This document shows, piece by piece, positions 12,307-55,611 of a stretch of DNA of 63,803 nt. The position numbers and the translations under genes were made by a program. The notes under the pieces were generated by a model. It made no database searches. It saw only the letters and a list, made by a program, of their open reading frames with translations, and was not told the origin of the DNA. The DNA comes from Macrostomum lignano (Eukaryota), in assembly GCA_002269645.1 (NCBI GenBank), contig NIVC01000844.1, forward strand, positions 1 to 63,803, in the 5' to 3' direction. The first letter of the stretch is position 1. Each line of letters starts with the position of its first letter.

Positions 12307-15295
12307 AGCTGGGGCTTTAGCACCAGGGGCTTTAGCACCAGGGGCTTTAGCACCAGTGGCTTTAGCACCAGTGGCTTTAGCACCAGGGGCTTTAGCACCA
12401 GTGGCTTTAGCATCAGGGGCTTTAGCACCAGTGGCTTTAGCACCAGTGGCTTTAGCACCAGTGGCTTTAGCACCAGTGGCTTTAGCACCAGTGGCTTTAG
12501 CACCAGGGGCTTTAGCACCAGTGGCTTTAGCACCAGGGGCTTTAGCACCAGTGGCTTTAGCACCAGTGGCTTTAGCACCAGTGGCTTTAGCACCAGGGGC
12601 TTTAGCACCAGTGGCTTTAGCACCAGTGGCTTTAGCACCAGGGGCTTTAGCACCAGTGGCTTTAGCATCAGGGGCTTTAGCACCAGTGGCTTTAGCACCA
12701 GTGGCTTTAGCACCAGGGGCTTTAGCACCAGTGGCTTTAGCACCAGTGGCTTTAGCATCAGGGGCTTTAGCACCAGTGGCTTTAGCACCAGTGGCTTTAG
12801 CACCAAGGGGCTTTAGCACCAGGGGCTTTAGCGCCAGTGGCTTTAGCACCAGTGGCTTTAGCACCAGTGCCTTTAAAACCAGGGACTTTAGCACCAGTGC
12901 CTTTAAAACCAGGGACTTTAGCACCAGTGGCTTTAGCACCAGTGCCTTTAAAACCAGGGACTTTAGCACCAGGGGCTTTAGCACCAGGGGCTTTAGCACC
13001 AGGGGCTTTAGCACCAGTGGCTTTAGCACCAGGGACTTTAGCACCAGGGGCTTTAGCACCAGTGGCTTTAGCACCAGGGACTTTAGCACCAGGGGCTTTA
13101 GCACCAGGGGCTTTAGCACCAGTGGCTTTAGCACCAGGGACTTTAGCACCAGGGGCTTTAGCACCAGGGGCTTTAGCACCAGTGGCTTTAGCACCAGGGG
13201 CTTTAGCACCAGGGACTTTAGCACCAGGGGCTTTAGCACCAGTGGCTTTAGCACCAGTGGCTTTAGCACCAGGGACTTTAGCACCAGGGGCTTTAGCACC
13301 AGGGGCTTTAGCACCAGTGGCTTTAGCACCAGGGACTTTAGCACCAGGGGCTTTAGCACCAGGGGCTTTAGCACCAGTGGCTTTAGCACCAGGGGCTTTA
13401 GCACCAGGGACTTTAGCACCAGGGGCTTTAGCACCAGGGGCTTTAGCACCAGGGGCTTTAGCACCAGGGGCTTTAGCACCAGGGGCTTTAGCACCAGTGG
13501 CTTTAGCACCAGGGACTTTAGCACCAGGGGCTTTAGCACCAGGGACTTTAGCACCAGGGACTTTAGCACCAGGGGCTTTAGCACCAGGGGCTTTAGCACC
13601 AGTGGCTTTAGCACCAGGGACTTTAGCACCAGGGGCTTTAGCACCAGGGGCTTTAGCACCAGTGGCTTTAGCACCAGGGGCTTTAGCACCAGGGACTTTA
13701 GCACCAGGGGCTTTAGCACCAGTGGCTTTAGCACCAGTGGCTTTAGCACCAGGGACTTTAGCACCAGGGGCTTTAGCACCAGGGGCTTTAGCACCAGGGG
13801 CTTTAGCACCAGTGGCTTTAGCACCAGGGACTTTAGCACCAGGGGCTTTAGCACCAGGGGCTTTAGCACCAGTGGCTTTAGCACCAGGGGCTTTAGCACC
13901 AGGGACTTTAGCACCAGGGGCTTTAGCACCAGGGGCTTTAGCACCAGTGGCTTTAGCACCAGGGACTTTAGCACCAGGGGCTTTAGCACCAGTGGCTTTA
14001 GCACCAGTGGCTTTAGCACCAGGGCTTTAGCACCAGGGACTTTAGCACCAGGGGCTTTAGCACCAGGGGCTTTAGCACCAGGGGCTTTAGCACCAGGGGC
14101 TTTAGCACCAGGGGCTTTAGCACCAGTGGCTTTAGCACCAGGGACTTTAGCACCAGGGGCTTTAGCACCAGGGACTTTAGCACCAGGGACTTTAGCACCA
14201 GGGGCTTTAGCACCAGGGGCTTTAGCACCAGTGGCTTTAGCACCAGGGACTTTAGCACCAGGGGCTTTAGCACCAGGGGCTTTAGCACCAGTGGCTTTAG
14301 CACCAGGGGCTTTAGCACCAGGGACTTTAGCACCAGGGGCTTTAGCACCAGTGGCTTTAGCACCAGTGGCTTTAGCACCAGGGACTTTAGCACCAGGGGC
14401 TTTAGCACCAGGGGCTTTAGCACCAGGGGCTTTAGCACCAGTGGCTTTAGCACCAGGGACTTTAGCACCAGGGGCTTTAGCACCAGGGGCTTTAGCACCA
14501 GTGGCTTTAGCACCAGGGGCTTTAGCACCAGGGACTTTAGCACCAGGGGCTTTAGCACCAGGGGCTTTAGCACCAGGGGCTTTAGCACCAGGGGCTTTAG
14601 CACCAGGGGCTTTAGCACCAGTGGCTTTAGCACCAGGGGCTTTAGCACCAGGGACTTTAGCACCAGGGGCTTTAGCACCAGTGGCTTTAGCACCAGTGGC
14701 TTTAGCACCAGGGACTTTAGCACCAGGGGCTTTAGCACCAGGGGCTTTAGCACCAGGGGCTTTAGCACCAGTGGCTTTAGCACCAGGGACTTTAGCACCA
14801 GGGGCTTTAGCACCAGGGGCTTTAGCACCAGTGGCTTTAGCACCAGGGGCTTTAGCACCAGGGACTTTAGCACCAGGGGCTTTAGCACCAGGGGCTTTAG
14901 CACCAGGGGCTTTAGCACCAGGGGCTTTAGCACCAGGGGCTTTAGCACCAGTGACTTTAGCACCAGGGGCTTTAGCACCAGGGGCTTTAGCACCAGGGGC
15001 TTTAGCACCAGTGGCTTTAGCACCAGGGACTTTAGCACCAGGGGCTTTAGCACCAGGGGCTTTAGCACCAGGGGCTTTAGCACCAGTGGCTTTAGCACCA
15101 GGGGCTTTAGCACCAGTGGCTTTAGCACCAGTGGCTTTAGCACCAGGGGCTTTAGCACCAGGGGCTTTAGCACCAGTGGCTTTAGCACCAGGGACTTTAG
15201 CACCAGGGGCTTTAGCACCAGTGGCTTTAGCACCAGGGACTTTAGCACCAGGGGCTTTAGCACCAGTTGCTTTAGTACCAGGGGCACCAGCAACA
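12307..15295. repeat. About 3-kb array of the 15-mer GGGGCTTTAGCACCA with G/T/A variants and higher-order periodicity
   Basis: About 199 monomers; variants CAGGGGC, CAGTGGC, CAGGGAC; single-nt register changes near 12806 and 14022. Confidence 0.98.
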
Positions 15296-29184: not shown

Positions 29185-32100
29185 CATAGAAATCTAGAAT
29201 ACTAACTGGAAGTGAAGGCTTTCGCGGGGGCGTACATACCCGGGCCGGGATAAAAAGCTCCTCTTCCCCAAAAGTTTTATTTCCCCCAAAATTTTAATGT
29301 TTATTTATCATTCTTTCCATTGAAACAATTTTATTTAAGGTATATTGCTTACCAAGAGTACACAAGTTATATTTCTCAAGCAGTGCAGTGAATACGAAAC
29401 TTACCATCAGTGGGCGCCAAACTTTGCAACTTCTCTTACAGTCGGTCCAGTCGCTGATGCGGACAGGCGTTTAGTCCAGTTCTTTGCAGCAGTGTTAAAC
29501 ATCTTCCTGCACACCAGCTGCAAGATTGGATGCTGATACTCACAATGCGTTTGGAATCGCAATTGTGGGAGTTGTTCAAAAATCTTGGAACAAACTGCTT
29601 CAAACAGACTGATGTGTCTGTACCTCGATTTCAGAAACCGCTGACAGCGCTGCAGTTGCATGATTATCACCCAAGCCTCTTTGCAGATGGTGAACACCAG
29701 GTCAGAAGGGTTCGTTAGACCACCGCGGTCTAGCTGTCGCAGAAAGTCAGATGGCGCTTCGGCTGCAGATTCGTCTGGAGTGGCAACTAGTAGCTGGTTG
29801 CATGCAGTGCAGCTTCTTTGCGCTGTGATGGACTTGGCGATTTTTCCAGCCACATAGTAGGTTACGTTGGCATCAGCTGCTTCGATCTCCTCAATTAGGT
29901 TTAGTTGGTCTGCAATTTGCCCGGCTTCTTCCATTAAGTCGCTGCTCTCGCTGTGCAGGTCCTTTGCAGCTGCAAGTGACTGAATTGCCTGTGGTGCAGC
30001 ATGACTGAACTTCAGAACTGAAACAGAACGGATTGCCTTCTCACCATCCAGAACATCTTTGCACGAAACATAGTAGTTTAATCCTTTTCGGTGACGGTAC
30101 CATCCAAATCTTCCTTCCAGTGGGTCCGACTGGAAAGCTCCGACCAGAACATATTCGAACATAAGACTATTGAGTAAGTACCTGCAGACTTCAACTAGAG
30201 CATCCAGTGTGTGACTGAGGGCCAGAAAGGTTTCGTCGCTAAGACCTTTGCTTCTGCAGGCCTTCCATTCGCGCAGATAATTAGCGACGTCCGCGAGGTA
30301 GGTAAGCTTCCAATCTGTGTCTGACCTGACTGGATCTCGGCAACAGTCTCTTTTATGTTTGCCAATTGAGCTCGTCTTGACATTTAAAACTTTCCAAAGT
30401 TGCGTCACCGCATGGACAAAAGTCGCAGTGTCGCCCCACGGCTTCCTTGATTCGCCGAGTAATATTCCAAGGCGTGCGCGGTAGACTCAGAAAACACAGC
30501 TAGTGCCAACTTTGGTGAGGTCTTCTGAATACTTTTTGGATCGATGACGCTTGAGTTGAGTTTTGGGGCCAGTTTGAGTGGCTTGTCCTGTTCCAGATTG
30601 TACAGCTCTTTGATGTTCTCAAATTTTGCTACAATTAAGGAATCAGCCGTTCTCTTCTCATGTGGTAGCGGGACATTAAAAAAGGCGCTAATCTTTTGCT
30701 GGGAGCTCCAGAGACCGCCTTTTCTGAAAATTGTTATAGACGTTTTTAATTGTGTGCGTTGGGTCAAACAGAAGGAAAATCTTCTTTTCTCGATGGAACG
30801 GATGGGGTACGCATGTTTGCAGAATGCCACCGCAAAGCTTGTGGACAAAAAAAACGCACGGTTTGCGGAATGGTTGTCAACCAAGATGGTCACTACATTA
30901 AGGTTTGTGCGCTGCAGCATCCCCATGACGCTCGTGTAGTGCTCGTGCAATATTTCAGCAGTCAACTTGCTGAGGGGGAAAAGTGCGACGACATCGCGGT
31001 ACTTTCCGGCGATTGACTTGACCATGAAGCAGAGCATTGCTGAAGCCGGGTTGGCCTCCTGCATGCCAACAATAGACCCGGAAGAGCAGTCTATTCTTCG
31101 ATTTAGGTGTATCTCATCAATAATCAGGTTGACATTACTCTCCATTATTGACAGATTTTGAGTCCGTAGATGAAGGTAATTTTCGTCCGAGACGCCAGGG
31201 CTGACAGACAGAGGACTAGAAATCGCCGCTAGTCGTCTAACTGATGGCAGAACAAGCAGGTCCTGATCCAGCAGCACCTGGTAGCAAGCTGAACTGGTGG
31301 ACTTCAGCACCATGGCAAACACTATCAAACCAGGGGAGTACCGTCTGGCCTCCTTTGCCTGGCAACGAAGCCTAAGCTGCTCCACTATAAACTGGATTTG
31401 CTGCATCAGTGGCGTGGCAGAGTCATTCGATTCCTCCAGCAAGTTGCACAGGCAATCGATGGCAGCTTCAATCCATTTAGCTTCTGCGCTTCTCGGATTG
31501 GGATCAGGGATGCCCCACGATTTTGCTAAAGCTAATAAGTTTTGAATCTGCGAAAACAAGGTGATCTTTCCGAGATCCAAAAATTGTTCAAATCGCTTCA
31601 TTGGAACCGGTTGTCCTTTCAAACTTACAGAAGCAATCATATCGCGTTGAATTTTTACAGAGCAGACCAGATTCGGGACATCCTCCACATCAATCAGGCA
31701 GAACGCAATGGAGTCGGCGCCAAACACAGGAACGAATCCAACAGGAATCGGATTGCTCTCTAGCATGGTCTTGATTTCCTCCAACGATCCCACTTTATCC
31801 AACGACAGAAACTCCGATGCCGCTGTTTCTAGCCTGTCACTTTCGGCTTGGTGTCGTAGCTCAGCTGTGGCTGATTCGGTCCGGAAAGTAGAAGCCATTG
31901 GCTGCAGTCTTTCCGGAAGTTGAGGAAAAACAGAGGGGATGGCTCCCTTTCGTAAAACGCGCAGGCTCAGTTGCGCATTTCTCTTGCGCTTTCGACGAGT
32001 GTTGGAGTCTTGCGATGTGCTGATGAAGTCCGACTCCAAAAAGTGCGCAGAGCACAACCGAGACTCCTTAGTTGGGGCATAGTGCTCTCTGCGAATTCTT

Positions 32101-48085: not shown

Positions 48086-48799
48086 ATGAACACAATGAAC
48101 AGCATGCAGCAGCAAGCCAGCCAGGCTGTGCAGCGCCTGCAAGGCACCTGGCGGTCAGCAATGGGCCGCATGACCAATCAAATGTTCCCAGTTCGCAAGC
48201 AGGATCTGGAGAAGATCCGCTTACAGACTGGCCGCACAGGGCTTGAGTACGCCACCTTCTTGCCATTGCAGATTGTGTATTATTTCAACGCATTCTTTGC
48301 TCCATTCTGGATTGTCGGCTTCCTATTGTCCATAGTTGACAAGTACAGCCAGCTGAATTACATCTATCAGCCAATATTGATCGCCCTGTTCTGCTTGTAT
48401 TGCATCCTGGAATTTATCCGGCTTTACATTGGCTATTTCGGCAATCTGTCGGAGAATATTGCCGATTTAGCCGGTAGTTGGCTTATCACGACTATTATAC
48501 AGCTGCCAGCTATCTGCTTCTTTCTATTCAACTATTTTCTGCTGGTGAATCCCTTCGAGATCGTCATGCACTCTGTGGAATTCATATTCGTACTGCTAGA
48601 AGTGATCATGGGCCTGTACACTATCAAAGTGTTTCAAACTGTTCAGGCATTGAAGTTTCACCACAAGATGGAGTATTTCAATGCTGACGGGTTGGACCAG
48701 TCTGGCGAGTCCAGGGAAGACGGCTACGTCTATTATAACAATGCCTTCGAGGGTACCGAGTTGCGAAGGAGGAACGCCGGCCAAACCACCATTGCTTGA
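48086..48799 (+). CDS. TMEM17: Ciliary transition-zone membrane protein TMEM17 (TMEM17/216 family), intronless CDS
   Basis: 237-aa ORF with four hydrophobic helices; LQIVYYFNAFF and LEFIRLYIGYFGNLSENIADLAGSWL...IQLP match the family signature. Exact start Met uncertain. Confidence 0.88.
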   Translation: MNTMNSMQQQASQAVQRLQGTWRSAMGRMTNQMFPVRKQDLEKIRLQTGRTGLEYATFLPLQIVYYFNAFFAPFWIVGFLLSIVDKYSQLNYIYQPILIALFCLYCILEFIRLYIGYFGNLSENIADLAGSWLITTIIQLPAICFFLFNYFLLVNPFEIVMHSVEFIFVLLEVIMGLYTIKVFQTVQALKFHHKMEYFNADGLDQSGESREDGYVYYNNAFEGTELRRRNAGQTTIA

Positions 48800-49322: not shown

Positions 49323-50080
49323 ATATCCAGTAATTCCAGTTGCTTGAGCTGCGAGATTAAAAGTTTTAAATTTGATCGATTGTAGAACGAAATAGTTAAC
49401 TGACTAAATATCATGAATTACTCGTACATAATAAATTGTATTGTCTTGCGCAGCTGTTTAGTTAGAAACCTGCAGATATCTGATATCTTTGGATTATAGC
49501 ACCGAATCAATCGTTGCGAACCTAAGTTGTGAATATTAAATTCAACTGTATTTAAAAACAATTTGAAGTATCTTATACATTAGACATTCCACCATTCCGT
49601 CCATTGTTATTTTTGTGTTGTTTCATTTTACAAGACTAAAGTACTTAAAATTTTTCAAGGTAATGTTCTTAAGAGTAAGAGAACTTATAGGGAGCATGTG
49701 TGTCCACTGGCTGTGACGCATAACACTTTTTATTTATCAGATACTTGTAATGTCTGTATATGTATTTAATAAATATCTCTTTTATTCGTTTGTTACAAAC
49801 CTATTGTAGTTTTTTTTACTGTGTTGACACAGTTTATTGTATTTAAGTACCAAAAAACATAATTTTTTTATTAAACTTGTAGTACAAGTCTTGTATTTAT
49901 TTTTTTCATGAAATATTCAGTGCAGTATTTAGTTGTTATAGCTATGGTGACTCAATTAGTTTAATTTCAACCGGCTGGATCTGTCTGTCTACTGCTGCTA
50001 AAAGACGTCGATTGACTGTTTAAAACTGTGAGTAGTTTTGTATGCTTAGATGTAAATTTTTATTAGTAAGAGATTTATCA

Positions 50081-50178
50081 ATGATGACCTCGAATGTCTA
50101 ATTTGAGTCTAGAGAGTGACTATATTTGTTTATAGTTGCTCGTGAGTACCTTGAAATTAAACAAGAATTACCGTCTGA
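50081..50178 (+). ncRNA. Box C/D snoRNA candidate A, predicted guide for 18S U578 (yeast)/U627 (human); snR77/SNORD65-like
   Basis: Box C ATGATGA, box D CTGA. GAATTACCG (50165-50173) complements 18S CGGUAAUUC; the D+5 rule points to that U. Confidence 0.65.
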
Positions 50179-50245
50179 AGTATCAATACCAGATGAGGTT
50201 TGTTAATATTCCCACTTTTAATGTTACAGTTATTGGCCTATATTA

Positions 50246-50325
50246 ATGATGATAAAATTATTGTATGCAAAGATAGAATCGTGACTTTTTGCAATCTAAA
50301 GCTGATTTAATGATAATGAGACTGA
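50246..50325 (+). ncRNA. Box C/D snoRNA B, 18S Am99/100 guide family, guide interrupted by a TAATGA duplication
   Basis: ATGATGA ... AAGCTGATTTAATGA-TAATGAGA-CTGA. Confidence 0.7.
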
Positions 50326-50522
50326 ATATTTAGAGCCAGGAAACTTTATTATAAATATAGTTTGTAGCTTCTATTTTTAATATCGATCTTCCTATCAACC
50401 TGCTCCTTTTGTTTTAGGACCTCTACAGTGTATTATCGGTTCATGTGTTAAAGAAGATAGGTAAGTCAATTGCATTATTAGTTACTAAATTTAGTAGAAC
50501 AAAGGATTTTATGAATACAGCT

Positions 50523-50593
50523 TTGATGACAATCTCTATAAAAATGACCTCAAATATTATGAGTGTAACCTGAAGCTGATTTAATGAGACTGA
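50523..50593 (+). ncRNA. Box C/D snoRNA C, 18S Am99/100 guide (snR51/SNORD57-like target)
   Basis: TTGATGA ... AAGCTGATTTAATGAGA-CTGA; 15-nt complement to CUCAUUAAAUCAGCU. Confidence 0.85.
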
Positions 50594-50792
50594 ATGCTTA
50601 TCAGTAGCAATTATTTGTTCAAACAGAACTCATTTTCTTGAATTAAATTTACTTAAAACAATCAATAGCGTAACATTTTATTTCATTTTCCAGGATTGGA
50701 TTTCGGCTGTAATGGAACTGATATCTGGTAAGCTTGTTTTTTCATTTTTATTACTGTTCTTCAGTAGCAATTACTGTTTGATATTTAAGCAC

Positions 50793-50887
50793 ATGATGAC
50801 ACTTGAACATTAGAACGTAATTATTAATAAACACCTAACAAGTGGCTTATTAGTTTTACGAATTGATATTAACACCCAGCTCTCTGA
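50793..50887 (+). ncRNA. Box C/D snoRNA D, LSU C2948 (yeast numbering, snR69-like target) guide family
   Basis: ATGATGA ... TAACACCCAGCTCT-CTGA, complementary to LSU GAGCUGGGU. Confidence 0.82.
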
Positions 50888-51414
50888 AGCAATGTTTAGA
50901 ACCCAACCTAGTACTAATACACCTATTTTAATGAAATTAGCTAATCGAAATTTCATGCACAGCCATTATTTTTGTTACAGGTCGCAGTTTTAAGACCAGT
51001 TTGTGTGTAAAAGATCAAGTTACTGCTTAAATTGCACGTCATAGGGTAAGTGTAATTTATTTCCTAATAACTGTGTTATTAATTATTTAACTTTTTGCAT
51101 CAGTTTTCCACTGAGGCCTTGTGAGTGAGTAAAAGATTTATCGATTTTATGGTCGACCGTCCCTATCTAAACCCCACCTCACTCCGCTAACCCCATTTTA
51201 CTGTAGCAAGCGTGTGGAATCGGAATGGGTAAGAGAGCTTTATCGATTTTCTCGCTGGCGTCTTAACCCCACCAAATTCCCTATCTTATCTGCCCCCACC
51301 ATTAGCCCCACCAGCTAACAGCCCCCAAGGCACGGAGTGAGTCAGTGTTGTTATCGATTTTCTGGTTGGTCGCCCCAAGCCAAGCCCCACCCCATTTTTA
51401 GGTTATTTTGTGCC

Positions 51415-51867
51415 CTAGGGATTGCAAAATCCCGGATTTTTATGATCCCGGGATCAGAATAATACAGATTTTTATGCTTTTAGGTTGAAATTTTAAGGCA
51501 AAATATGCGCTAAACGCTTTTTTGCTTACTTTTTTATTGTTATAGAGATAATGATCTATTTGTAGATGATAAACAGCATTATCTTGTGACCTATTAAAGT
51601 AAGTAGTATAAATGTACTAATTAGTAGTAAAAAAGCAAATTATATCAAAATTTAAATTGGAATTAATTTCACATTTAAATCTATGATGCGGGGTTTAAAA
51701 AGGTGCCACGCGACGTGAGGCAATTAACGGAAATTAGCGCAGTATAATAAACTAATTGTGGGCCTAATTATGTTTATATTACAGCACTTTTTGTAAAAAA
51801 TATTAACAAAAATTAGTTTCGGGATTTGGGGTCCCAAATCCCGGGATCCCGGGATTGCAATCCCTAG
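51415..51867. mobile_element. MITE-like insertion with 12-bp terminal inverted repeat CTAGGGATTGCA
   Basis: Ends CTAGGGATTGCA...TGCAATCCCTAG, subterminal (A)TCCCGGGAT repeats, AT-rich middle; TSD at most TA. Confidence 0.8.
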
Positions 51868-52036
51868 CCCACTAGCGTTACTTTATCCGCATATAGCTTG
51901 TGACTACTGGTTTTAAAGTGACAACAACCTCCATTCCCCATAATACGTACGGGGTTAATTTCTCCCTTTGCGTATCTGAAACTTTGATACGTTTTTTTCT
52001 GGTAAAGTTTAATTTAATGTACTCGTAGATTTGCTG

Positions 52037-52104
52037 ATGATGAATTTTTAAACAATAAATGATCGCAATGTGATTGCAATCCAAAGCTGATTTAATGAGA
52101 CTGA
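52037..52104 (+). ncRNA. Box C/D snoRNA E, 18S Am99/100 guide
   Basis: ATGATGA ... AAAGCTGATTTAATGAGA-CTGA. Confidence 0.87.
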
Positions 52105-52290
52105 AATAGCATTTCTGTGTTCGTAAAATTTTTTCGCAGGTATTTATTCAAAATTCACATGCTGTTACGCTACAGCTCTGCAATTCGTTCCAATTTTAGA
52201 TTTGTTGATGAAGTGCTTCTATTTCATTGCCAATGGTAAGCTTGCCCCGTGTTATTTTTGGAAGCTACTGTACTCCGTTCAGTATTAAAA

Positions 52291-52374
52291 GTGATGACAT
52301 TCGAACATTCGATAGCAATGGACACTTTTAGTGGCTCATTGTTTTCTAAGTGATAATAACACCCAGCTCTCTGA
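52291..52374 (+). ncRNA. Box C/D snoRNA F, LSU C2948 guide family
   Basis: GTGATGA ... TAACACCCAGCTCT-CTGA. Confidence 0.82.
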
Positions 52375-52558
52375 ATAGTGATTTTATATTTGGTTTTTGA
52401 ATGTGAATTTTGTTCTATTTGAAATTTGAAGCATTACAGTCTCGCCTTTGCATTTGCAGGCATTGAAATCGAGAAAAAATTACCATGGTTCATGACACTG
52501 ACAAGGTAAGAAAGCAAGTCTGAAATAGTTGTACTCATTTTATTTTTAAAACATTTTT

Positions 52559-52622
52559 AGGATGAATTTATATTTTATGAAAATTTTTGTGATTAACACA
52601 AAAGCTGATTTAATGAGACTGA
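52559..52622 (+). ncRNA. Box C/D snoRNA G, 18S Am99/100 guide, degenerate box C
   Basis: Box C reads AGGATGA; guide and box D intact. Confidence 0.7.
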
Positions 52623-52819
52623 CAATTCTTTATACGAGCTTAGATTAGGAGTTGGAAGTTGTTAATATCGTTGCCACTGAACTATTCCTTTTTTTACTAT
52701 TGCAGACCTCAGTGTTCATTTCGAGAAGATTCTGCGAAAGTCAATAAATTTGATCTACTGTAAGTAGTTAGTTCGATCATACTTTTCGTTGTATTTTTAA
52801 CTACGATATTTTTCCAAAT

Positions 52820-52887
52820 ATGATGACCTTTGAACATTTGAATGCAGGATTCCATCCGACTATTTGATATTAACCCCAGCTCTCTGA
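52820..52887 (+). ncRNA. Box C/D snoRNA H, LSU C2948 guide family
   Basis: ATGATGA ... TAACCCCAGCTCT-CTGA. Confidence 0.83.
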
Positions 52888-53097
52888 ACTTTCGTTGAAC
52901 TTATATTTTTGTACTTTTGATTTGGCTACATGCACTTTTCGTAACCAAAATAATTTGATCTTAATAAACAAACATTTCTATTTTTTAGACTTGCTGAAAA
53001 CACTCAAATTTGATTGGAAATTGGCTAAAGTGTAAGCAATAGCTCTTATTCATGTTTAATTTCGTTATATATTTTTCACTTCATTAAACGTAAAAAT

Positions 53098-53182
53098 ATG
53101 ATGAAAATCGAACAGTTGACTAAAGTTCATCGTACAAGCGAATGGTGTACTTTTATCTTTGATATAAACCCGAGCTCTCTGA
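53098..53182 (+). ncRNA. Box C/D snoRNA I, LSU C2948 guide family (extra G in guide)
   Basis: ATGATGA ... TAAACCCGAGCTCT-CTGA. Confidence 0.75.
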
Positions 53183-53356
53183 GAATTATACAGTATTATA
53201 AACCTTTTAAAATAATTTAAAATACTTAAATTAAATTTGATATACCAAATACACAGGGCTGTTTATTTTTCAGATCGCACATGGAGCCTTATTTGTTTCT
53301 CGATTGCTCTTGTAACAAGTTCATAATTTATTTAAATATCAAAACCCAATATCAAT

Positions 53357-53425
53357 ATGATGATACTTTATTAAATATTTGATCACAACCGTGACCTTAC
53401 ACTAAAGCTGATTTAATGAGACTGA
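53357..53425 (+). ncRNA. Box C/D snoRNA J, 18S Am99/100 guide
   Basis: ATGATGA ... AAAGCTGATTTAATGAGA-CTGA; flanking AATATCA/TGATATT inverted repeat. Confidence 0.88.
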
Positions 53426-53620
53426 TATTTTGCACTCTGCGATAATATTACTTAATAATATCTAAATTTCTCGTACATTTTCTCATGATATTTTTTCTCT
53501 ATTTCTTTTAGAACTAATTAATTGAAGCTGAAGTCGAAAATTGGAATTTAAAGATAATATCAGTAAGTATAAAATGATTTTTTAATCATGAAAAAATATT
53601 GAGTTATTAAATGGTTGAAA

Positions 53621-53692
53621 ATGATGAAAGATTTACATAGTTGAGTGATTTAATCTCTGATGATCATTCGAAAGCTGATTTAATGAGACTGA
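53621..53692 (+). ncRNA. Box C/D snoRNA K, 18S Am99/100 guide with canonical D' box
   Basis: ATGATGA; D' CTGA at 53657-53660 followed by TGATCA; guide plus box D at 53689-53692. Confidence 0.87.
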
Positions 53693-54334
53693 AAATTGTC
53701 TACTCATTCATTTTTATTTTTATCTTTTCGCGTCAAAGTTTGTGTTTTTTAACAAATAATTTTTAACATCTAATTTTAGATGGAAACTGATCTCAACAGT
53801 TAAAGTAAGTGACATACTAATAACTTGGAAAGGAATTTAATACTGTAAAACTCCATGTTTTTGGTTGGTATTAAGAAGATTCAAAAAGCCGCTTGAATGC
53901 TTAGCAAAACAGCTTTCTACTTACACTACAGTAGTAGAGAAGAATACATAAGCTATTTTATAAAAATAAAGGCAGCTAAAATAACTTCGATAAGATTAGA
54001 AGCCCACAAGCTTGCTAATTGGTTCAGCAATAATGTACATTAGCCAGTCTACTGAATGTACATGCAGCTTTAGGCTGGAATTCCGAGAAATCAATGAAAA
54101 TTTGGGCGGGCGGGGGGGTAGTGTGAAAAGGCGCCGTCGGAAGGTTTACGCTCTTAAGGAGGGGTAAGACTGAGCCAATAAACTTCCTACTTACTACTTA
54201 CTTACTACTGAACTGAAAGTAGCTTGCACGCAAATGTGCTGAGTGGCCCATCCTGCGGTTTGTGCACGAAAATTGACCAGTTCAGGGGCTGTCGTGCGAT
54301 TCACTTTGAAACGTTACTTTTGCACAAAAACAAT

Positions 54335-54436
54335 ATGATGACAATTGAACATTTGAACTGCTTTAGTGCTAGACAAATATTAAGCCTATTTGTTTATCCA
54401 AAAGCTAAAAATTGCAATTAAACCCCAGCTCTCTGA
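54335..54436 (+). ncRNA. Box C/D snoRNA L, LSU C2948 guide family
   Basis: ATGATGA ... TAAACCCCAGCTCT-CTGA. Confidence 0.82.
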
Positions 54437-54624
54437 GACTCTTTGATTTTATATTATTATTTTAAGACCTATTGGATTTCTTAGAATGTTTAACTTTTCG
54501 TCAAAAATTTTGTTATTTCAGATTTCCCTTGTAAAATTTTCGGTCTTCTGTTCCAAGTTATAAAGTAAGTATTACGAAACTATCTATATATATTTAGTTA
54601 TTAAGCATTTCACGTTCTAAACAC

Positions 54625-54722
54625 ATGATGAAGTTGAACATTTGAGACCGGATTGTAGCAAATTCTTTAAAAAAGTGTTTTGTGCTTTCGCGGTTTATTT
54701 GAAATTAACCCCAGCTCTCTGA
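54625..54722 (+). ncRNA. Box C/D snoRNA M, LSU C2948 guide family
   Basis: ATGATGA ... TAACCCCAGCTCT-CTGA; flanks AAACAC and GTGCGTGTTT can pair. Confidence 0.83.
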
Positions 54723-54864
54723 GTGCGTGTTTGATCAGTTTTGAGAAAACATGTCTCATTATACTAGATATCGGTTCAAATTATTTCAATATTTCTTATC
54801 ATCATTTTGCCTTTCAGATTGAACTCCAGGCAGCAAACAGCGGGAATAAAGAAGTTTATAGGAT

Positions 54865-55180
54865 GTGTAGAATGTACTTTTTACTCTCATAGAATGTGTA
54901 GAGTGTACTTTTCATCTCAGAATGTGTAGAGTGTACTTTTCATCTTATAGAGTGAGAGTGTACTTTTAATCTCATGGAGTATGTAGACTGTAGTGTACTT
55001 TTCATCTCATGGAGTGTGTAGAGTGTATGGTATCTATTAATGTACTTTTTATCTTGTGGTATGTAGAATGTACTTTTCATCTGATAGTCGCATAGTGTGT
55101 AGATAATGCTTTTCGACTCAGTTTGTAGAATGTACTTTTTAGTTTCTAGAATGTGTTGAATTTACTTTTCAGTTTCTAAG
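54865..55180. repeat. Degenerate TGTAGAATGTACTTTTCATCT tandem repeat
   Basis: About 10 loosely conserved units. Confidence 0.75.
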
Positions 55181-55217: not shown

Positions 55218-55611
55218 CAACCAACAATTGATTGGCTGGGTTACGCAACCGATTTGCTGATTGATCGGCTGGCTGCGCTGGCTTCTGATTGGCTGGCCGC
55301 TGCGCCTGCAGATGCGCTGCAGCACAATCGACATCAAATGTGGCTGGCTTGCTGCCATTGGACTAATACAAGGTTTGTGTCTGCGGGCTAAGCTTTATTG
55401 CTGTGACCGAGTGCGGACTGATCGCTGTAGCTAGCTGTCTGCCTGTCCGTCTCGCTGTCTGTCTGTCTATGTTTCCGTCTGCTGTGTCTGTCTGCCTGTT
55501 CCTGTCTGTCTGTCGGTCTGTCGGCTGGCTGTCTGTCTGACTGTCTTAGCGTCTGTGTCTGTCTGTCTGCCTGTCTGTCTGTCTGTGTGTTTGTCTGCCT
55601 GCCTGCCTGCC

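Follow-up and report, generated by a model that had tools for sequence, protein, structure and literature searches.

A predicted non-coding host gene with thirteen intronic box C/D snoRNA units in the flatworm Macrostomum lignano

The vertebrate snoRNA hosts UHG (SNHG1) and GAS5 give rise to multi-exon, ORF-poor and poorly conserved spliced RNAs, with one rRNA-methylation box C/D snoRNA per intron. Each host carries mostly different guides, a 5'TOP start is typical, and the distance quoted between snoRNA and 3' splice site is about 70 nt in vertebrates and flies. In mammals, SNORD115/116 form large one-per-intron arrays. In Drosophila, tandem isoforms of one rRNA guide are found one per intron, about 70 nt before the 3' splice site (PMC1821038). 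This layout, already known in flies and mammals, has not been described so far in flatworms.

The locus reported here lies at 49921-54870 on the + strand of the Macrostomum lignano contig NIVC01000844.1, within a window of 63.8 kb (the whole stretch of DNA that was analysed). With a probability of roughly 0.8, the region from 49.9 to 54.9 kb corresponds to a multi-intron Pol II transcript without protein-coding function, a snoRNA host gene of the UHG/GAS5/dUhg type whose products would be 13 intronic box C/D snoRNAs. The designations gene and non-coding host, and the ends at 49921 and 54870, are what we infer from sequence signals. The predicted host shares with UHG and GAS5 an ORF-poor multi-exon layout and a fixed distance from snoRNA to 3' splice site, but has just three guide types among its 13 units. 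Like SNORD115/SNORD116 and SNORD113/114 it holds many snoRNA copies, each in an intron of a repeated non-coding module; those mammalian loci, however, are imprinted and far larger, with modules still visibly repeated whereas the flatworm flanks have diverged, and their snoRNAs are orphans without canonical rRNA targets while the flatworm guides match conserved rRNA sites. The closest likeness is to Drosophila dUhg1-8 and the mfl 3'-UTR cluster DmSnR60 a-d. As described in PMC1821038 (citing Huang et al. 2005), these likewise have introns with a single box C/D snoRNA each, short exons lacking a function of their own, successive introns with duplicated isoforms of one rRNA-methylation guide, a constant snoRNA position before the 3' splice site and conservation restricted to the snoRNA parts. 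Set against that description, the flatworm locus differs in amplifying two guide families six-fold each, interleaved in one host, in its spacing (about 90 nt, against about 70 nt) and in the SL trans-splicing of its host organism. The initial annotation had presented the six-fold amplification of two guides as unlike GAS5/UHG; the amplification holds, while the novelty was overstated in view of the fly tandem isoforms (PMC1821038) and mammalian SNORD115/116.

All elements first described, with the 13 units on the + strand, are present at the coordinates given for the locus.

50081-50178, + strand: unit U1, box C/D snoRNA of the snR77/SNORD65 type (18S Um578), D guide GAATTACCGT then CTGA
50246-50325, + strand: unit A2, SNORD57 type, guide interrupted by a 6-nt insertion in the window contig
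50523-50593, + strand: unit A3, SNORD57 type, C box UUGAUGA, SNORD57 22.2 bits
50793-50887, + strand: unit C4, snR69/snoR69Y type, guide variant ACACCCAGCUCU
52037-52104, + strand: unit A5, SNORD57 type, SNORD57 26.9 bits over the full model length
52291-52374, + strand: unit C6, snR69 type, guide variant ACACCCAGCUCU
52559-52622, + strand: unit A7, SNORD57 type, degenerate C box AGGAUGA
52820-52887, + strand: unit C8, snR69 type, guide variant AACCCCAGCUCU
53098-53182, + strand: unit C9, snR69 type, guide CCCGAGCUCU with one mismatch
53357-53425, + strand: unit A10, SNORD57 type, SNORD57 28 bits, E = 0.011
53621-53692, + strand: unit A11, SNORD57 type, perfect C' box TGATGA
54335-54436, + strand: unit C12, snR69 type, snoR69Y 19.4 bits, Afu_190 19.3 bits
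54625-54722, + strand: unit C13, snR69 type

Motif matches reproduced the proposed order U,A,A,C,A,C,A,C,C,A,A,C,C and its three guide types (A six times, C six times, U once). The type A motif GCTGATTTAATGA and the type C motif AGCTCTCTGA each have six matches, on the + strand only and inside 50301-54722, with none on the - strand or elsewhere in the 63.8-kb window. RTGATGA C boxes are concentrated in the same way: 11 of the window's 18 + strand matches fall within the locus, which is 7.8% of the sequence, and the - strand of the locus holds one; the C boxes of A3 (TTGATGA) and A7 (AGGATGA) are off consensus. Units measure 63-101 nt from C to D and recur with a period of about 270 nt, and about half of them have weak terminal stems beside boxes C and D, or none. 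Type C has the canonical layout C / 11-nt guide / D' (UNGA) / C' (UGAUAU) / 13-nt guide / D, and its D' carries an invariant second element of 7-8 nt (UYGAACA + UNGA); type C is a snoRNA with two elements rather than one guide. The region is AT-rich, as had been claimed, with a GC content of 32.7% against 44.9% for the window.

Between the units lie short predicted exons, delimited by splice signals.

49921-50027, + strand: predicted exon 1, donor GTGAGT at 50028 kept in 3/3 copies
50418-50460, + strand: predicted exon 2, splice signals kept in copies
50694-50727, + strand: predicted exon 3, splice signals kept in copies
50981-51045, + strand: predicted exon 4, splice signals kept in copies
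51410-51872, no strand assigned: MITE-like insertion with 18-nt terminal inverted repeats, intron 4, upstream of A5, absent from homeolog L002
52200-52235, + strand: predicted exon 5, splice signals kept in copies
52460-52505, + strand: predicted exon 6, splice signals kept in copies
52706-52759, + strand: predicted exon 7, splice signals kept in copies
52989-53031, + strand: predicted exon 8, splice signals kept in copies
53274-53311, + strand: predicted exon 9, weak donor GTAACA
53512-53562, + strand: predicted exon 10, splice signals kept in copies
53780-53804, + strand: predicted exon 11, splice signals kept in copies
54522-54564, + strand: predicted exon 12, splice signals kept in copies
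54818-54870, + strand: predicted last exon, AATAAA at 54845-54850, predicted 3' end

The 12 donors comprise 11 GTAAG/GTGAG and one GTAACA, and the 12 acceptors consist of a Y-tract followed by AG; the M. lignano donor motif GT[G/A]AG (PMC8629364) fits every predicted donor except GTAACA. Exons between predicted splice sites are 25-65 nt long. Counted from where box D ends, the 3' splice site is 83-101 nt away in 12 of the 13 units (mean 91.1, sd 5.7), exactly the range first reported, and across all three genomic copies of the array the range is 82-101 nt; U1 lies at 239 nt because it shares intron 1 with A2. The accompanying statement that this spacing is close to the position favouring splicing-coupled assembly needs qualification, the distance being somewhat longer than the roughly 70 nt quoted for vertebrates and flies. 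The earlier description was also amended in that introns 4 and 11 hold insertions of 0.5-1 kb, both upstream of the snoRNA and one of them the MITE, which is outside the functional unit, and in that the guide of A2 has an insertion and that of C9 a mismatch.

The regular unit period, the presence of U1 and A2 in one interval with no exon separating them and the many units without terminal stems would also suit a polycistronic or independently transcribed cluster of the plant or trypanosomatid style, released endonucleolytically, in which the GT-AG exons are fortuitous. We regard this as the least probable of the alternatives, with hardly any chance of being correct, as the 12 donor/acceptor pairs alternate strictly with the units, 11 of the 14 + strand GTAAG of the region fall exactly at predicted exon ends, GT and AG are all kept in three copies, and the distance from box D to the acceptor is constant despite complete divergence of the flanks. 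These signals and the three-copy comparison support the intronic host interpretation of the initial annotation.

The spliced product of 638 nt has 11-17 stops per frame, and its longest ATG-ORF, 50 codons in length, carries a frameshift in a paralogous copy, in agreement with the claim that the region holds no meaningful ORF. The assembly annotation calls no gene at the locus. TRF likewise reported no array from 49325 to 54862, while arrays fill the neighbouring genes; the contrast in minisatellites was correctly noted at the outset. A TMEM17-like gene ends at 48799 and a SET-like gene runs from about 55218. The acceptor-like ATATTCAG stands directly before 49921, so the 5' end of exon 1 is uncertain: this T-rich tract and CAG may be an SL trans-splice site, and the transcript may start elsewhere, since 49921 is an acceptor-like site. 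The snoRNAs could also be intronic while the exons belong to a + strand neighbour, as a TMEM17-like 3' extension or a SET-like 5' leader, or make up a cistron that follows TMEM17 in an operon resolved by SL trans-splicing. All four genes lie on the + strand, and the tract before exon 1 resembles the SL acceptor motif [T/C]TNCAG; SL trans-splicing affects 30% of M. lignano genes and operons 15% (PMC8629364), an AATAAA at 49768 precedes the acceptor by about 150 nt, near typical operon spacing, and the Drosophila "dUhg6" turned out to be mfl 3'-UTR introns (PMC1821038). Against this, several poly(A) signals occur between TMEM17 and 49921, the AATAAA at 54845 ends the last exon, CCAAT-like repeats at 55230-55300 point to a separate promoter for the SET-like gene, and the acceptor matches the SL motif only in part. 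We consider such an arrangement unlikely, and favour the separate host gene.

The guides are complementary to conserved rRNA sites, and fall on sites that the SNORD57, snR69 and snR77 families modify. Guide-target pairing was computed on two eukaryotic rDNAs (18 kb of rRNA), with 200 shuffled guides as control. The type A guide forms 15 bp (14 Watson-Crick, 1 G-U) with SSU position 99-101 in both rDNAs, a score reached by 0/200 shuffled guides; this is the only guide-target match that is statistically exceptional by itself. SSU 99-101 is the yeast Am100 site, guided by snR51 (PMC5199042), and the type A target is contained in WormA (GCGAATGGCTCATTAAATCAG), a primer that works on M. lignano rDNA (PMC5068713). 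The type C guide pairs with GAGC*UGGGUUUAG of large-subunit rRNA, where the target C follows the A-loop U at a distance of exactly 27 nt. As that U is yeast 2921 and the snR69 site is Cm2948 (PMC5199042, PMC8817022), the type C target equates with the snR69 site (2921+27 = 2948). The U1 guide forms 10 bp with GCGGU*AAUUC of the 530 loop (the Um578 site), with an alternative site at SSU ~152 (11 bp including 2 G-U pairs); the target is probably the 530-loop uridine (yeast Um578), which makes the label U578 given to this unit defensible. Duplexes of the U size (10 bp) were matched somewhere in the 18 kb of rRNA by 25/200 shuffled guides and those of type C (9 or 8+4 bp) by 31-47/200, and the U and C assignments are made because the duplexes land on known methylated sites and because of family resemblance.

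This resemblance is largely confined to boxes and guides. The type A guide is the same as that of SNORD57 (18S Am99/Am100; yeast snR51) at 13/13 nt plus CUGA, CUGAUUUAAUGAG+CUGA being identical to the Rfam consensus; outside boxes and guides, a UGACCU motif is the sole likeness. Type C shares CCCAGCUCU and the box with snR69 and the consensus of plant snoR69Y (25S Cm2948), including an identical mismatch at guide position 10, but snoR69Y has its guide at D' whereas type C has it at D, and type C carries an additional conserved D' element. The U1 guide by box D matches the snR77 / SNORD65 (HBII-135) / snoR77Y family (18S Um578/Um627), although U1 matched no Rfam family. In the Rfam comparison that had been proposed as a check, SNORD57 was the best match for five A units, but 0/13 units reached a gathering score (best 28 bits vs 47).

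Two more copies of the array are present in the same assembly, L002 (about 95% identical) and L003 (about 99%), and the 13 units and every GT/AG are kept in all three. Between the window and its homeolog L002, boxes and guides carry 5/415 substitutions (1.2%), compared with 3.7% for internal spacers, 4.9% for exons and 5.6% for introns; boxes and guides differ from introns (p = 2e-5) and exons do not (p = 0.56), which supports the view that the predicted host exons are neither coding nor constrained. Within the array too, boxes and guides alone are invariant and alignable between paralogous units, with no residual similarity in the flanks or exons of the modules. Individual lesions occur nonetheless: the 6-nt guide insertion of A2 is found in the window contig and not in L002 or L003, the C9 mismatch in the window and L003 while L002 has the consensus C, box D of A3 is deleted in L002, and the degenerate C box of A7 is common to all three; C8 is identical in 3/3 copies. 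Together with the failure of every unit to reach the Rfam gathering threshold, such lesions might indicate a decaying relic, that is, snoRNA pseudogenes or a repeat family that has lost expression or function. This is very unlikely, given that boxes and guides evolve about 5 times slower than introns between homeologs and are the sole parts still common to old paralogous units, and that each genomic copy has its own lesions, the pattern to be expected when a family is redundant but under selection. The array now behaves as a redundant multicopy family whose individual members are decaying, different ones in different homeologs.

The processing steps proposed for this host gene draw on established knowledge of intronic box C/D snoRNAs; transcription, splicing, snoRNP assembly and methylation, and a host that is separate from the neighbouring genes, are what we infer from sequence. 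The host gene would be transcribed and then spliced, and each snoRNA, about 90 nt before the 3' splice site, would bind Snu13, Nop56, Nop58 and fibrillarin during the spliceosome stage. Exonucleases would trim the debranched intron down to the protected snoRNP, and the exon product would be thrown away. 2'-O-methylation would take place at the rRNA nucleotide opposite guide position five, counted upstream from box D or D'. For all six A units this would be the 18S adenosine that corresponds to Am100 in yeast and Am99 in human, for all six C units the LSU cytidine of the peptidyl-transferase region that corresponds to yeast Cm2948, and for U1, probably, the 530-loop uridine (yeast Um578). The proposal expects CUCAUUAAAUCAG in M. 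lignano 18S and GAGCUGGGUUUAG in 28S. The array itself probably arose by old tandem duplications of ~270-nt exon-intron-snoRNA modules, including an (A,C) pair. The internal spacer of C6 still resembles that of C4, and A11 holds internally a partial copy of its own guide.

The locus is best read as a predicted host gene for snoRNAs, comparable in kind to UHG, GAS5 and dUhg. This reading is based on its sequence anatomy, on the restriction of selection to boxes and guides, and on complementarity to conserved methylation sites, and from these features we infer transcription, splicing, assembly of snoRNPs with fibrillarin, Nop56, Nop58 and Snu13, and methylation. The spliced exons of such a gene would be disposable and each intron would deliver a box C/D snoRNA via a splicing-dependent pathway. 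A box C/D snoRNA is expected to have box C (RUGAUGA) close to its 5' end and box D (CUGA) close to its 3' end, with 60-110 nt from one to the other. All 13 predicted units carry CTGA as box D at a C-to-D span of 63-101 nt, and the C box is RTGATGA in 11 units and imperfect in A3 (TTGATGA) and A7 (AGGATGA). On the + strand, 11 of the 18 RTGATGA sites of the window sit in this 5-kb stretch; its - strand has one. A scripted motif search of the whole window located six copies of the type A guide core GCTGATTTAATGA and six copies of the type C guide end AGCTCTCTGA, each on the + strand only and within 50301-54722, with none elsewhere on either strand. The remaining unit was also placed by motif location:

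50081-50178, + strand, the single U unit (U1)

The motif positions reproduce exactly the unit order proposed in the initial annotation (U,A,A,C,A,C,A,C,C,A,A,C,C), by which the units are numbered U1, A2, A3, C4 and so on to C13. The remaining RTGATGA...CTGA pairs of the window are without convincing rRNA complementarity. Flank duplexes resembling a terminal stem clearly beat shuffled sequences in only about 4 of the 13 units (A2, A5, C13 and C4), with none in the others.

Twelve donors (GTAAGT/C/A, with one GTGAGT and one weak GTACA-type GTAACA) and 12 acceptors (pyrimidine tract plus AG) alternate with the units, giving predicted exons of 25-65 nt that concatenate to 638 nt. The M. lignano cis-donor motif is GT[G/A]AG (PMC8629364), with which the array donors agree, and 11 of the 14 + strand GTAAG sites in the region coincide exactly with predicted donors. 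Judged from these signals, 11 predicted introns hold one unit each and intron 1 holds two. Box D had been claimed to lie 83-101 nt from the 3' splice site in 12 of the 13 units, and measurement returned the same range (mean 91.1, sd 5.7); the box D of U1 lies 239 nt from the acceptor because U1 shares intron 1 with A2. The introns are about 230-290 nt long, save introns 4 and 11, which are enlarged by insertions that both lie upstream of their snoRNA unit. A rule of ~70 nt to the 3' splice site was reported for vertebrates and Drosophila (PMC1821038), and the constant ~90 nt spacing of the M. lignano array parallels it. A fixed snoRNA-to-3' splice site distance is now also seen in a lophotrochozoan, at ~90 nt despite diverged flanks.

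The G+C content is 32.7% in the region versus 44.9% in the window. Two further claims about this region held up. The lack of a meaningful ORF is apparent from 11-17 stops per frame in the 638-nt spliced exons, whose longest ATG-ORF has 50 codons, and no tandem-repeat array occurs in the region while the neighbouring genes are filled with arrays. A protein-database search with the longest spliced-exon ORF gave no protein predicted from the spliced transcript.

Two additional copies of the locus, the homeolog L002 (about 95% identity) and L003 (about 99%), were reached via the TMEM17-like protein cluster in the same assembly (GCA_002269645.1, of which the window is the whole contig NIVC01000844.1); the paralogous contigs of the locus are NIVC01000137.1 and NIVC01000497.1. 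M. lignano has a hidden tetraploidy and the large chromosome is duplicated in the sequenced DV1 line (PMC5068713, PMC8629364), and the extra copies fit both circumstances. L002 and L003 hold 13 units in the same order, with GT and AG kept at every junction and D-to-acceptor distances of 82-101 nt. Substitutions relative to L002 amount to 2.7% in units, 4.9% in exons and 5.6% in introns, with p = 1e-4 for units against introns and p = 0.56 for exons against introns. Within the units, boxes and guides differ at 5 of 415 positions (1.2%, p = 2e-5 against introns) and internal spacers at 3.7%. The longest ORF of the spliced exons has a frame shift from one copy to another. By these rates and the frame shift, the exons evolve as neutral sequence would, and the boxes and guides of the snoRNAs show the pattern of selected sequence. 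With stops in all frames, no conserved ORF and an intron-like divergence, the exons have the character of non-coding exons.

Alignment of the units within the array is in keeping with this division of the sequence. The six C units are invariant only in box C, the D' element, the D' box, a C'-like UGAUAU, the D guide and box D; in the six A units this holds for nothing but box C, the D guide and box D. Similarity between flanks and exons of different modules is not above shuffles, except for the spacers of C4 and C6 and for A3 and A5 in their guide-proximal parts, and these matches suggest an (A,C) block duplication. Individual units carry lesions. The A2 guide has a 6-nt insertion in the window contig only, the C9 guide has a mismatch in the window and L003 and not in L002, and an 8-nt deletion in A3 of L002 (12275-12295) leaves box D without its GA (GAGACTATCAG). 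The A3 lesion in L002 and the A2 lesion in the window signify that different array copies decay in different homeologs. Such private lesions of single copies are the pattern of a redundant multicopy family selected as a whole.

Guide-rRNA pairing was tested on rRNA of eukaryotes other than M. lignano, using rDNA units from metagenome contigs (SSU, 5.8S and LSU rRNA were confirmed by Rfam in loci L028, L033 and L042) and 200 shuffled guides as control. A box C/D guide is expected to run for at least ~10 nt up to box D or D' and to place its rRNA target at the fifth position. The type A guide pairs with GGCUCAUUAAAUCAGUUAU over 15 consecutive positions (14 Watson-Crick, 1 G-U), a duplex score reached by 0 of the 200 shuffled guides. 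Its fifth position faces the A at SSU 99-101, which makes type A a predicted 18S A99/A100 guide; the site corresponds to yeast Am100 (snR51) and human Am99 (PMC5199042). The CUGAUUUAAUGAG+CUGA of type A is identical to the SNORD57 consensus (Rfam RF00274), and a UGACCU motif after the D' box is common to both. The target core occurs in 24 of the 29 rDNA loci containing the region. Two of the 29 have C for U opposite a guide G and read CTCATTAAATCAGCTATGG (C instead of T), a variant with which the guide would pair over 15 Watson-Crick positions and no wobble. The site in M. lignano 18S is predicted as CUCAUUAAAUCAG[C/U], with C favoured, so that guide position 15 would form a G-C pair. The flatworm primer WormA amplifies M. 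lignano rDNA (PMC5068713), and its sequence contains the type A target. Type A was treated as a single-guide snoRNA because no two of the six units have the same D' guide and the rRNA pairing of these D' guides is not above that of shuffles. Within A11, window positions 53645-53663 hold an internal partial copy of its own guide (GTGATTTAATCTCTGA), the 3' end of which is overlapped by a perfect TGATGA (shared TGA). The 5' half of A11 was considered as snR60/Z15 (Rfam, 23.8 bits) and dropped, as only 7-8 positions pair with the snR60 site.

Type C was assigned to the LSU cytidine equivalent to yeast C2948 on the basis of the site and of family resemblance, not of duplex strength. Its D guide forms 9 bp with GAGC*UGGGUUUAG in the variant ACACCCAGCUCU, and 8 bp, one mismatch and then 4 bp in the variant UUAACCCCAGCUCU; these duplexes alone are not above chance, their score being reached by 31-47 of 200 shuffles. 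In L033 and L042, counting exactly 27 nt in the 3' direction from the A-loop U leads to the target C (2921+27 = yeast C2948), and yeast C2948 is the snR69 site (PMC5199042, PMC8817022). Type C matches the snoR69Y consensus (Rfam RF01198) in CCCAGCUCU next to the box, and a mismatch at guide position 10 is also common to both. The invariant UYGAACA(K) followed by UNGA stands 11 nt after box C, the canonical position of a D' guide. It forms 10 bp with 18S GUGUUCAAAG in one copy and 5-8 bp in the others, and 7-8 bp with the 5.8S-type CUGUUCGAG in all six; neither pairing is above chance, and the latter fits the T/C variation at position 7 of the element. Further rRNA target sites named for the guides would be GCGGUAAUUC and GAGCUGGGUUUAG.

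U1 is the candidate for the snR77/SNORD65/snoR77Y kind. Its guide pairs with the 18S 530-loop GCGGU*AAUUC over 10 bp (1 G-U), a score reached by 25 of 200 shuffles, and a competing site at SSU ~152 offers 11 bp with 2 G-U pairs. The 530-loop site is yeast Um578 (snR77) and human Um627 (HBII-135) (PMC8817022). No Rfam family matches U1, and its D' guide gave nothing convincing in the rRNA pairing or Rfam search.

The Rfam search advised in the initial annotation gave no match at gathering thresholds over the whole window, and lenient searches gave sub-threshold matches only, among which SNORD57 is the best match for five A units (28.0, 26.9, 23.1, 22.2 and 22.2 bits; threshold 47) and snoR69Y matches unit C12 only (19.4 bits; threshold 45). 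Standard Rfam annotation thus misses 13 of 13 units, and threshold-based flatworm ncRNA annotation is therefore blind to them.

Mammalian UHG and GAS5 carry different guides, and SNORD115/116 and SNORD113/114 are many-copy orphan arrays. Unlike orphans of the SNORD115/116 type, all three guide types of the array match conserved rRNA methylation sites, U1 as a candidate. The proposed contrast with GAS5/UHG stands in that two guides occur six-fold here; the layout itself was already known from Drosophila, whose hosts have isoforms of a single rRNA guide in tandem, each in an intron of its own and at a constant spacing to the 3' splice site (PMC1821038). Particular to the present array is that two rRNA guides, each amplified six-fold, are interleaved within one host, in a flatworm. 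A full-text literature search turned up no snoRNA host gene reported from Macrostomum or from flatworms, and the present one is apparently the first to be reported from a macrostomid, its methylation guides likewise being the first assigned there. RNAi and transgenesis are established in M. lignano, and a single host holding six copies of either guide would be a convenient handle to lower two defined rRNA methylations at once and to learn their role in stem cells and regeneration.

A stand-alone snoRNA host gene is expected to have its own promoter and 5' end, often with a 5'TOP, and a poly(A) site, and to give a spliced RNA. Of transcript-end signals the sequence shows an AATAAA at 54845 and, at 49920, an acceptor-like site, and no others, and the assembly annotation has no gene calls between the TMEM17-like gene ending at 48799 and the SET-like gene from 55218, all neighbours being on the + strand. 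The host may not stand alone: the stretch could belong to a neighbouring gene as an extension of its UTR, or could form a downstream cistron that is trans-spliced. The drawn start of exon 1 adjoins an acceptor-like T-rich tract plus CAG (window 49905-49921) that may be an SL trans-splice acceptor, an AATAAA lies at 49768, ~150 nt upstream of the acceptor-like site, and SL trans-splicing affects 30% of M. lignano genes and operons 15% (PMC8629364); Drosophila dUhg6/mfl is a precedent (PMC1821038). The CCAAT-box-like, inverted repeats GATTGGCTGG / GATCGGCTGG at window 55230-55300, just upstream of the SET-like gene and probably its promoter, argue against the snoRNA host as a 5' leader of that gene.

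Am100 is substoichiometric in yeast. Beyond the host-gene reading, it is conceivable, and in our estimate improbable, that the six-fold amplification is other than plain redundancy and ties the dose of two methylations to one host, with a flatworm-specific type C D' guide and an SL-operon host. Amplification could set the dose of Am100 and of Cm2948 (peptidyl-transferase region), and that dose could follow the expression of one host transcript, for instance in stem cells. The type C D' element could guide a flatworm-specific modification at UGUUCGA/UGUUCAA, be it in rRNA or in some other RNA. An SL trans-spliced operon could contain the host as its downstream cistron; if true, snoRNAs would here be expressed in a manner not yet described.

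Several other features were observed on the contig. Intron 4 contains three ~100-nt direct repeats (window 51128-51400; start TTATCGATTTTCTGG) with CCCCACC-rich tracts inside, and a MITE-like element (window 51410-51872) with 18-nt terminal inverted repeats GTGCCCTAGGGATTGCAA / TTGCAATCCCTAGCCCAC, located upstream of A5 and so outside the interval from that snoRNA to its 3' splice site. The element is present in the window and L003 and absent from L002, and is therefore a recent insertion. The extra ~500 nt of intron 11 (window 53806-54330), partly GC-rich and common to all three copies, are probably an old repeat insertion; they diverge faster than their surroundings, with substitutions at 32 of 299 positions in 53900-54199. 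On the - strand, window 29407-32057 holds two adjacent, intact-looking long ORFs of 333 and 550 aa, the latter with TNP-like RNase H and GTP-binding insertion domains (THAP9/P-element transposase type). A neighbouring ORF has 97% identity to a M. lignano protein (UniRef GTPase). Minisatellites fill the introns of neighbouring coding genes, at window 12311-15285 and many other sites; TRF gave 75 rows for the window, overlapping rows being the same array, and the largest minisatellite has a 15-nt unit in ~198 repeats.
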